Of a stretch of 5,955 nt of DNA, positions 2,450-5,723 are shown piece after piece. Source of the DNA: Octopus sinensis (lineage: Eukaryota); contig NW_021829785.1 in NCBI RefSeq assembly GCF_006345805.1, forward strand, positions 1-5,955, read 5' to 3'. The translations under genes were made by a program, and so were the position numbers. Numbering within the stretch: position 1 is the first letter of the stretch; the number at the start of each line of letters is the position of its first letter. Below the pieces are notes generated by a model. That model was given only the letters and a program-made list of their open reading frames with translations. It was not told the DNA's origin and searched no databases.

Positions 2450-2462
2450 AATGTTAAAAATA
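2450..2462 (+). repeat. Target-site duplication, left copy (AATGTTAAAAATA)
   Basis: Identical to 3438-3450. The flanking bases differ on both sides (2449 C vs 3437 A; 2463 G vs 3451 T). It abuts the (GTTA)n tail. Confidence 0.9.
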
Positions 2463-2478
2463 GTTAGTTAGTTAGTTA
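2461..2478 (-). repeat. (TAAC)4 3' microsatellite tail of the LINE
   Basis: The plus strand reads TA(GTTA)4 and the minus strand reads GGGG-TAACTAACTAACTAAC-TA. It contains the ORF2 stop codon (2472-2474). Confidence 0.85.
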
Positions 2479-3159
2479 CCCCGTTTTCCTCTAACATGTA
2501 GGAAGCCGGCTGCAATCAGGTAGCGGACAGCGGCGATCGGGCGCTCGCAGAGATCCCGAATCCCAATAGGTGGCGACTGGTGAGGCGGCCCAGGACAGGA
2601 AAAAGGTCTTCAGGGGCGAGGGTGCGAGTGTTTCGAAAAAGAGTGGATGATGTCCCGAGCGAAGTCGTGCAAGCTGGACACGGAAGTACCTGTCGAGTGA
2701 TTGCTCTTAAGGATGGACTGGTGGCGGAGGAGAATCAAGGAGTTTGTTATTTTTAAGCATCCTGATAGCACGAGTTGAGATTTAATCGTGAATTAATTTC
2801 TTCCCAGTTTTCCCATTGTTCGTTAAGAGTATTTTTGAGAGAGGTCTGCATTGATCGGCTAGAGTAGTGATAATATGTCTTTTGTTTTCTAAGATAGAGA
2901 TTTTGTGGCATGGATGAGATATTTCTTGTATTTCGTAGAGGAATTGAAGTCCTCTCATCTCCAAATGGTCTTCGATCGGAAGGATACAAGATTCCCAATG
3001 AAGATGATCGATGGGAGTGGAGGCTAGGCAGCCAGTTATTGTGCGGAGCCCTGAGTTTTGGATTCTTTGTAGTTTTTGGAGATTTGATAGAGAAAGGTTC
3101 CATGACCAAGCCGGACTGCCATAGTTCATTGATGATTTGACAAATTGTCTGTAGACCAG
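2472..3159 (-). pseudogene. LINE ORF2 C-terminal (post-RT) region, inactivated
   Basis: It reads LVYRQFVKSSMNYGSPAWSWNLSLSNLQKLQRIQNSGLRTITGCLASTPIDHLHWESCILPIEDHLEM...KLIHD*ISTRAIRMLKNNKLLDSPPPPVHP*EQSLDRYFRVQLARLRSGHHP. After a frameshift or deletion it continues FSCP...IRDLCERPIAAVRYLIAAGFLHVRGKRGN*. Stops are at 2782-2784 and 2707-2709. The Y.SPAW, LQ..QN..LR.ITG, HLH.E..ILP and L.RLRSGH motifs are typical of LINE ORF2. This includes track ORF 2782-3129. Confidence 0.9.
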
Positions 3160-3437
3160 AAAATCTTGTCATATTAAACAACCCACACTTACACACAAGG
3201 TGTGCCCTGAGACCTAGCGACACTAATACTTCTCCAGATCTCTCCCTCTGCTCCCCGTCGATCTCCTCTCGCATAAATTGGTCAGTGACTTATGATCTCC
3301 CATCGGACCACAATCCGATTCTCATTGCAATTAGCCTCCTATCTCCTCGGGACATTTTCCGAAAAACTATCATCAATTACAACCGGACAAATTGGGCCGC
3401 CTATCGTCAAGATACAGAAGCCGCCTTCGAAGGCAAA
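3159..3437 (+). pseudogene. Inverted LINE AP-endonuclease (APE) C-terminal half plus start of linker
   Basis: The open plus frame reads ENLVILNNPHLHTRCALRPSDTNTSPDLSLCSPSISSRINWSVTYDLPSDHNPILIAISLLSPRDIFRKTIINYNRTNWAAYRQDTEAAFEGK. It carries the APE motifs LN..TR, S.PD(I/L) and SDH.PI, and the post-APE NW..Y motif. The segment ends exactly at the right TSD. Confidence 0.9.
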
Positions 3438-3450
3438 AATGTTAAAAATA
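3438..3450 (+). repeat. Target-site duplication, right copy (AATGTTAAAAATA)
   Basis: Identical to 2450-2462 and directly follows the last LINE-like codons of the inverted segment. Confidence 0.9.
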
Positions 3451-4285
3451 TTGAAAGAATAGTAAGGAAGGTGCATTCTAAACACCTTAAAAAGATACTT
3501 AAAAATAATTAGTTAATGTTTTGAAAACTATTTGATTGTCTTATTTTTGACAAAATTGGCATTGATGGCAGCTTTCAGTCTGGACTCGGTTTCATTCTCG
3601 CTCGCAACATAATGGTCGACGTCTACAACTCTATAACGTCAGCCGTTATGGGATCGTCAAACCCACATGCATGTTAACATCCGGAGGAACGTGCCAGCCA
3701 CGAGTGCTAGGATGTGAATCGCTACGAGCTTCCTCCTCGAATGAGTGGAAGTGAAAGAGTTTCTAGAAAGAAAAAATCTAAAATCTTTACGAAAATTCGA
3801 ACTTGAGCACCCTGAATGAGCGTGTGATAGTTAATTTGTGTGGTCTTTAAAGTCGGAAATCCTCGACTAAATATCTCTTGATTGTTTCATTGAAATTATA
3901 GTGGGTGCTGAAATGTTCACTAAGAAACATCTAACACGCATATTGGGAGAATAGTGGCTGAGAAGCTCAATGATATGATCCCAAGAGTTTTCATATGCTT
4001 GCAAACTATCATAAGTGGGAGTGATGTAACGATCCAGACAGTAAAGAAGTGCGAAATAGAGCACACAAATAACTAGGAAGGTTAAAAGACCAAACAAACC
4101 AATTCTTAAGAGCTTAAGAATAAGTGAGAAAAAAGACTCGGAAAGAAAGCTTGTTACACGGGTAGGAAAACGCAAAAAAGAAACAAGATAGCTCTCACAA
4201 AATTTTAAGACAGAATGAAAAATGTGGGAAGAATGGGCTAAACAACGTTGAAAAAGAAACGCGCCGAACCGACAAGCACACGTTT

Positions 4286-4688: not shown

Positions 4689-4857
4689 TAACCAAAATAC
4701 AGAAAATAATTTTTTGATTTTTTTGGCGGAAAGGTTTAAGGGACCTCATCATTTGAGTCGAGGACATGGGTGTTGTTCATTTTAACCAAAATCCAGAAAA
4801 TATTTTTAATTTTTTGGCGGGAAGATTTTAAGGACCTCATAATTTTGGGCTTGTTCA
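4689..4857 (+). repeat. Imperfect tandem duplication, period ~94 bp, two copies
   Basis: Shared blocks are TAACCAAAAT (4689/4783), CAGAAAATA (4700/4794), T-run+GGCGG (GGCGG at 4725/4816), GGACCTCAT (4741/4832) and TTGTTCA (4773/4851). Confidence 0.85.
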
Positions 4858-4913
4858 CCATTATTGGAGAATTATAAGGGAAATATAACTTTCCTGCTTT
4901 CACTTTAAATACA

Positions 4914-5011
4914 CCTACACTACCTACATTGCCTACATTACCTACGCCTAGACTACCTACATTGCCTCATTACCTGCACCTATATTACCTACGCTTACAC
5001 TAAATACACTG
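4914..5011 (+). repeat. Degenerate 9-bp minisatellite (CCTACATTR) with a 33-bp higher-order unit
   Basis: The units are cctacacta, cctacattg, cctacatta, cctacg | cctagacta, cctacattg, cct-catta, cctgca | cctatatta, cctacg, cttacacta, aatacactg. Confidence 0.9.
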
Positions 5012-5428: not shown

Positions 5429-5662
5429 TATGCTGAAAATGTAGAAAAGGCATTATGAAAGAATCAAAATCTAGCCTAGATGAATTCAAAAAGGCTAAGG
5501 ATAATAAATGTTATTTATTTTATTTTTTAATTTTCTTAATTATCGAATTAAATATGATATATTATTCACACGCTAAGCACGCTATATTCTTCTTGTGTTG
5601 TGCATTTCTGTTGTTAATTATTATTTTATTTTTTTGTACTTTAATGTTTAATTTTTATAATA

Positions 5663-5723
5663 TTTTCGTTTTTTATATGTTTGAAGATTAATTAAATTGA
5701 CTACTGGTAAAGTAAAATATCTT
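5663..5723 (+). repeat. Dispersed AT-rich direct repeat, copy B
   Basis: TTTTCGTTT (5663-5671), TTTGAAGATTAATTAAATT (5680-5698) and GTAAAATATCTT (5712-5723). The first spacing equals that in copy A, and the second is 5 bp longer. Confidence 0.7.

Follow-up and report, generated by a model that had tools for sequence, protein, structure and literature searches.

Two pieces of a non-L1 LINE, joined head to head and enclosed by a single pair of 13-bp direct repeats, are found at positions 2450–3450 of the 5,955-nucleotide stretch of DNA analyzed here (the window). The locus probably arose when a CR1/L2-like LINE retrotransposed once, with priming from either side of a staggered break (twin priming), and we assign this reading a probability of about 0.65. 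Judged by the layout of the locus, twin priming would be the simplest explanation. The copy itself is dead: it lacks the reverse transcriptase (RT), and in its C-terminal part two nonsense codons are accompanied by a frameshift and a deletion.

Layout of the insertion

The order along the window is the target-site duplication (TSD), (GTTA)4, the minus-strand sense piece, the junction, the plus-strand AP endonuclease (APE)/linker piece, and the TSD again. The features are as follows:

2450–2462, no strand: target-site duplication, tail-side copy; exact 13-mer AATGTTAAAAATA, its last TA in phase with the tail repeat
2463–2478, minus: microsatellite 3′ tail (TAAC)4, from direct reading and TRF
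2479–2784, minus: decayed C-terminal part of ORF2, from tblastn with the C-termini of relatives
2785–3159, minus: sense segment, open post-RT region of ORF2, from profile and HMMER matches
3160–3161, no strand: 5′-to-5′ junction, two A's outside both alignments, which end at 3159 and start at 3162
3162–3437, plus: inverted segment, end of the AP endonuclease and linker, open reading frame, from profile and Pfam
3438–3450, no strand: target-site duplication, inverted-segment side; exact copy of 2450–2462, GC 22.7% from here on

Exact copies of the 13-mer AATGTTAAAAATA are present only at 2450–2462 and 3438–3450 when the whole window is searched, and the match is not extendable in either direction, the next bases being C and A on the left side and G and T on the right. 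This single pair surrounds both LINE pieces, abutting the tail on one side and the end of the LINE homology on the other. The sequence between the two copies is 975 bp long and has a GC content of 46%; GC is 36% in the left flank (2350–2449), and on the right it drops from 46.6% (3159–3437; the same value is obtained for the inverted piece) to 22.7% (3438–3512). The fall at 3438 is a marker, independent of the TSD, of the same right boundary. No inverted repeats are present at the breakpoints 3159 and 3437.

On the left, (GTTA)4 of the plus strand (2463–2478) abuts the TSD copy, TRF reporting a perfect period-4 array at 2461–2478 with 100% matches. The last TA of this TSD copy is in register with the tail, which amounts to 2-nt microhomology between primer and tail; a TSD end in phase with the tail is the usual trace of target-primed reverse transcription. 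Prior to the insertion, a target with a single 13-mer would read ...CAATTTTGTCAATGTTAAAAATATTGAAAGAAT....

The two LINE pieces and their family

The sense piece, on the minus strand from 3159 to 2479, covers a LINE ORF2 from the post-RT region to the C-terminus, its final ~240 codons. Its frame is open from 3168 to 2785 (128 codons), with homology beginning at 3159. When the minus strand is compared with a 1022-position profile of 12 full-length ORF2 relatives, its part from 3159 to 2641 aligns to positions 781–960 with 158 bits; a single-sequence HMMER search of 1.8 billion representative proteins with the post-RT piece yields 1351 matches (best E 7e-25, the best ones 46–53% identical), several of them full-length LINE ORF2 proteins of ~1000 residues. 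The post-RT match starts 20–40 residues past the end of Pfam RVT_1 in relatives; in P0011 (920 aa), the piece maps to residues 797–885, and RVT_1 ends at residue 755.

Further downstream, the frame is interrupted by in-frame stops at 2784–2782 and 2709–2707, at both of which relatives have sense codons, and by a frameshift near 2610–2640, while the Cys/His knuckle has lost ~10 codons. The main frame of this decayed part, as aligned by tblastn, reads IHD*ISTRAIRML..LARLRSGH, and the terminal motif DLCERPIAAVRYLIAAGFL at 2561–2499 matches DLWxRPxxxxxFL of the relatives. The ORF2 frame (…FLHVRGKRGN*; 2476–2499, minus) takes its stop codon from the tail, as the first TAA of (TAAC)4, hence, the copy lacks a 3′ UTR. 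The element ends with ...AAAACGGGG(TAAC)4. In three contigs of relatives (L001–L003), the ORF2 stop is followed by 18–35 nt with GGGG and then by (TAC)3 or (CAA)n; this ending of relatives, GGGG and a short microsatellite, confirms 2463–2478 as the tail of the element itself.

In the inverted piece, the AP endonuclease is represented by its final ~60 codons, with the SDHNPI motif, and the linker by ~35 codons. The peptide encoded by the plus strand at 3162–3437, NLVILNNPHLHTR...TSPDLSLCSP...LPSDHNPILIAI...INYNRTNWAAYRQDTEAAFEGK, corresponds to the C-terminal third of the APE and the beginning of the linker. It matches profile positions 166–255 (76 bits), positions 65–116 of the 117 positions of Pfam Exo_endo_phos_2 (E 9e-4, below the Pfam cut-off), and residues 162–261 of P0011. 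The linker end of the piece, which is its 3′-most end, lies at 3437 against the right TSD copy, and the element there reads ...GAAGGCAAA (...GGCAAA).

At the junction, the string is TGTAGACCAGAAAATCTTGTC, and possible microhomology is at most 4 nt (GAAA, 3159–3162). Relatives have E/N-N-L/M at the boundary of the sense piece (ENMIIINNP in L001), and a hydrophobic residue or T ahead of L-x-Y at the boundary of the APE piece. Pairwise alignments hinted at an extension of the APE piece to the left of 3159, underneath the post-RT piece; the profile score gains nothing from it, and the extension was rejected.

With the two pieces at profile positions 166–255 and 781 to the end, ~525 codons (~1.6 kb) are absent, namely the remaining linker and the entire RT. 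Both pieces match one and the same set of full-length ORF2 relatives, at the identity expected for each domain; these shared relatives support the origin of both pieces from one family, and we infer that both were copied from one RNA.

What is seen directly comprises the layout, the TSDs, the tail, and, for both pieces, their identity and their place on the relatives; here our results agree with the sequence-only reading. It had described an insertion bounded by identical 13-bp TSDs, with a (TAAC)4 tail, a sense post-RT segment from ~3159 to 2479 (recovered here as the profile from position 781 to its end, followed by the tail), and an inverted APE/linker segment from 3437 to ~3159, the two joined at their 5′ ends in the head-to-head arrangement within one TSD that twin priming gives, and each of these elements is found at the coordinates it had been assigned. 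The gap, which it had put at probably over 1 kb with all of RT included, is likewise seen, with ~525 codons missing both on the profile and on P0011.

The element probably belongs to the CR1/L2 lineage of the Jockey superfamily, as suggested by comparison with relatives. The ORF2 proteins of the latter are 40–53% identical and have a C-terminal Cys/His region. Pfam finds only Exo_endo_phos(_2) and RVT_1 in seven full-length relatives, and RVT_1 alone in the eighth, the truncated P0001; no RNase H family is found in any of the eight at E≤0.001, and there is no space for RNase H between profile positions 781 and 1022. The tails of the element and of the relatives are non-poly(A) microsatellites. 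The closest relatives are metagenome contigs. One of these, L002 (ENA ERZ893782), has an ORF of 1251 codons with a PHD finger (Pfam, 29.4 bits) upstream of the APE in the same frame, and a 2A-like GDVELNPGP directly before the PHD finger (~380–555); a degenerate second 2A-like region is seen further upstream in this contig.

Within the Jockey superfamily, an N-terminal PHD finger in a single ORF has been described for CR1 subgroup 6 and L2 subgroup 4 (Metcalfe and Casane, 2014; PMC4120745). The absence of RNase H from the eight relatives, the PHD finger in the single ORF of one of them, and the short 3′ UTRs of three follow the CR1/L2 pattern, hence, the label "I-group-like" given in the sequence-only reading probably names the wrong group; its other statement, that the LINE is not an L1, holds. 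The PHD finger of L002 would be indirect support for placing the window copy with CR1/L2. The relatives share with the published CR1/L2 elements the combination of APE and RT, the lack of RNase H, microsatellite tails, and, in L002, the PHD finger (PMC4120745); the window copy differs from them in having lost RT and everything upstream of mid-APE, retaining the APE C-terminus and the post-RT region.

Two other assignments were considered. The I clade, or I group, is disfavored by the absence of RNase H from the eight relatives and the lack of room for it downstream of RT. The L1 clade is disfavored by the (TAAC)4 tail without poly(A) and by the full-length relative P0103: in a PDB sequence search, it matches human L1 ORF2p only in RT (~57 bits), no better than R2 (~60 bits), and is therefore not an L1-clade protein.

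Searches for further copies of the family gave no matches in the collections covered. A word-indexed protein search with both pieces concatenated returned 90 candidates, none of them significant; exact look-up of three ORFs of the window returned no record; metagenome scans with the APE piece and with the 3′-end DNA pattern AAACGGGGTAACTAACTAAC, as well as scans of prokaryote genomes and viral contigs with the post-RT piece, returned no match. A literature search found no (TAAC)n-tailed LINEs.

Several other features of the window were also noted. A third LINE fragment, from the N-terminal part of RT, is seen on the minus strand at 1070–1207, within a GC-rich block (~920–1400); it matches profile positions 429–473 (15.6 bits, E 1e-6) with several frame breaks, its best pairwise match being 50% over 38 residues. 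As a candidate for the missing middle of the insertion, this fragment was rejected, since it lies outside the TSDs and in the wrong order. At 1765–2100, on the plus strand, a putative decayed N-terminus of a retroelement integrase, …NFILIDGKVYLR… and …EIHETNHCGHNALDG… in three frames, was noticed by eye; it resembles the zinc-binding HHCC region, and has no Pfam or protein-database matches. Rfam gives a full-model match to SNORD59 (C/D-box snoRNA) at 1916–1986, minus (35.4 bits, E 1e-4; gathering score 45), and a weaker SNORD50-like match at 221–284, plus (23.4 bits, E 0.26). Repeats include a ~95-bp AT-rich sequence at 573–666 and 5621–5714 (81% identical, same orientation, 5048 bp apart), which may be a small dispersed repeat; a 66-bp direct repeat at 4689–4754 and 4783–4845 (83% identical), containing TTTTGGCGG.AAG.TTTAAGGACCTCAT; and a C-rich minisatellite at 4910–5002 (period 9/18/33, CCTACATTG-like units, score 124). 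The two ends of the window are not coding paralogues, as they have only the ~95-bp AT-rich repeat in common and their surroundings are otherwise dissimilar. No tRNA is found in the window, and Pfam gives nothing significant for its other GC-rich blocks.

Twin priming as the probable mechanism, and alternative explanations

Under twin priming, the endonuclease would nick the plus strand of the window after ...AAAAATA, and the 3′ end at the nick would pair via TA with the (UAAC)n tail of the RNA and prime the first cDNA, ~700 nt long, from the tail back to just past RT. The opposite strand would be cut 13 nt away, freeing a 3′ end ...AACATT; this end would anneal to an internal site of the same RNA, within the linker that follows the endonuclease domain, and prime a second cDNA of ~280 nt that extends back into the endonuclease. 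The intervening ~1.6 kb of RNA, with the remainder of the linker and the whole RT, would never be copied. The 3′ ends of the cDNAs would then be joined at 3159–3162, possibly via 1–4 nt of chance complementarity, and fill-in would yield the 13-bp duplication. We infer this order of events and the internal priming from the product.

The inverted piece is the more 5′ one in ORF2 and its 3′-most end lies against the TSD, as twin priming requires. The junction is clean, with only 2 nt outside both alignments. The 5′ inversions of L1 accompany duplications of 10–20 bp, which has been explained by the second priming requiring a long 3′ overhang (PMC4245944); the 13-bp TSD of this insertion falls in that range. 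Against twin priming, the 1.6-kb gap is large, and 5′ inversions of non-L1 LINEs are almost absent from cell-culture assays (PMC4245944). The two cDNA ends are far apart on the element, unlike the typical small deletion or duplication, although such closeness is typical rather than obligatory: among 287 inversions of human L1, 46% have cDNA ends within 20 bp, and in 54% they are farther apart (PMC12016303). Since only 46% of the L1 inversions are within 20 bp, the gap is not disqualifying, although 1.6 kb is still large.

Chance occurrence of the TSD and the position of the right boundary were assessed separately. The window contains nine exact direct 13-mer pairs, compared to 1.35 in block shuffles, most of the nine being AT-rich low-complexity sequence. 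The shuffle rate is ~8e-8 per position pair, from which, with one copy abutting the tail, the chance of a second copy no more than ~15 nt from where LINE homology ends is ~2e-6, or ~2e-4 if the second copy is allowed anywhere within 3 kb. The APE/linker frame continues past 3437 for 24 more codons (NVKNIERIVRKVHSKHLKKILKNN*), across the right 13-mer, to a stop at 3510–3512, and the alignment to linkers of relatives continues in frame to 3506, adding 4.7 bits to the profile score. This gain is reached by 2 of 308 controls, peptides from open AT-rich stretches elsewhere in the window; in a pairwise version of the test, none of 180 controls do as well. The gain is diffuse, ~0.2 bit per residue, with no conserved motif, and a profile search of the joined flanks alone finds no LINE signal. 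Due to the latter result and the fall of GC to 22.7%, the alignment beyond 3438 is probably a Lys/Ile/Asn/Glu-rich peptide that fits a poorly conserved linker by chance; were this homology true, the right boundary of the insertion would be misplaced.

The same layout within one duplication would be given by an ordinary 5′-truncated insertion (3159 to the tail) if end-joining had captured a stray LINE cDNA or DNA fragment (APE/linker) as filler, reversed by chance. Such capture would readily explain the 1.6-kb gap, the pieces not having to neighbor each other on one RNA, and the 5′ junctions of L2-clade LINEs commonly carry extra nucleotides; however, the usual filler is a few nucleotides from the flanks (PMC4245944), compared to 276 nt of the same kind of element here. 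Requiring an additional free LINE fragment at the right moment, and faced with two clean piece boundaries, this scenario is unlikely, if less so than the other three considered. It is quite improbable that the inversion was inherited from an already rearranged master, that is, an older twin-primed or otherwise rearranged copy that had kept the 3′ end to which the reverse transcriptase responds, transcribed from a nearby promoter and copied in trans. For LINEs with specific 3′ ends, short derivatives that keep this end are commonly mobilized in trans, and the decay of the C-terminal part (two nonsense codons as well as a frameshift and a deletion), beside TSDs that are still perfect, fits a source that was already defective; but perfect 13-bp TSDs beside ~5% decay are not unlikely by chance, and no second copy with such a layout was found in the protein, metagenome, prokaryote, and viral collections searched.

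An assembly artefact or a coincidence would mean either a chimeric contig at 3159–3162 or unrelated head-to-head LINE fragments with a chance 13-mer, the APE/linker piece then running to ~3510. The excess of 13-mer pairs, the weak plus-strand extension to 3506, and the fragment at 1070–1207, by which LINE debris is common in the window, agree with this; the exact abutment of the 13-mer on the tail, with its ~2e-4 chance of a second copy within 3 kb, the fall of GC at 3438, and the diffuse extension gain do not, and the left flank has no APE homology, although that would be expected if an older plus-strand copy had been split. We rate this possibility a shade below that of an inherited inversion. 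Most improbable of all is a colinear 5′-truncated copy (mid-APE to tail) that later underwent an inversion in place of its first ~280 bp and a 1.6-kb deletion: the final order of pieces would be identical, but two or three additional events are needed and one breakpoint must hit the boundary between element and TSD at 3437/3438 exactly, while inversion via inverted repeats is unlikely because there are none at 3159 or 3437 to drive it.

Comparison with L1 and other LINEs

Inversions at the 5′ end are a routine by-product of L1 integration, and twin-primed (5′-inverted) insertions of mammalian L1 were reportedly described by Ostertag and Kazazian in 2001; of 106 papers that use the term "twin priming", the 40 listed concern mammalian L1 almost without exception. 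In human, the 5′-inverted class makes up ~18–22% of L1 insertions (PMC12016303). The insertion described here shares with twin-primed mammalian L1 a single TSD of 10–20 bp and a sense piece with the tail joined 5′-to-5′ to an inverted, more 5′ piece. It differs in the tail, which is (TAAC)n rather than poly(A) and contains the ORF2 stop; in the gap, which is ~1.6 kb, whereas 46% of L1 cases are within 20 bp; and in the host, which has an AT-rich genome.

Outside L1, a single 5′-inverted insert was obtained for Nimb-2_DR in chicken DT40 cells (Yamaguchi et al., 2014; PMC4245944), hence, 5′ inversion is possible for other LINEs. Both that insert and the present locus are 5′ inversions of a non-L1 APE-type LINE, and the duplications of Nimb-2_DR peak near 12 bp; however, the former is an experimental I-group insert in a foreign cell, while the latter is a natural, old genomic copy, CR1/L2-like by its relatives. 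ZfL2-1, of the L2 clade and with ~5-bp duplications, gave no inversions in the same assay, and in this one systematic cross-species assay 5′ inversions were almost confined to L1 in human cells, hence the view that both element and host matter (PMC4245944).

The layout is rarely reported for LINEs other than L1, and as a twin-primed insertion the locus is a rare natural example, from another LINE group, of a known mechanism. This is a single dead copy with no effect on a recognizable gene, and its value is that of a pointer to survey the family in the genome. On balance, we lean toward the view that twin priming is restricted neither to L1 nor to mammalian host factors, but occurs naturally with a LINE that has a specific, microsatellite-tailed 3′ end and makes 13-bp TSDs. 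A clear natural CR1/L2-like case would show that the 3′ end of the second strand can prime on internal RNA in a very different LINE, and a 13-bp TSD accompanying an inversion would fit the proposed dependence on overhang length. If so, it would be the long 3′ overhang, and not poly(A)/oligo(T) chemistry, that permits the second priming.
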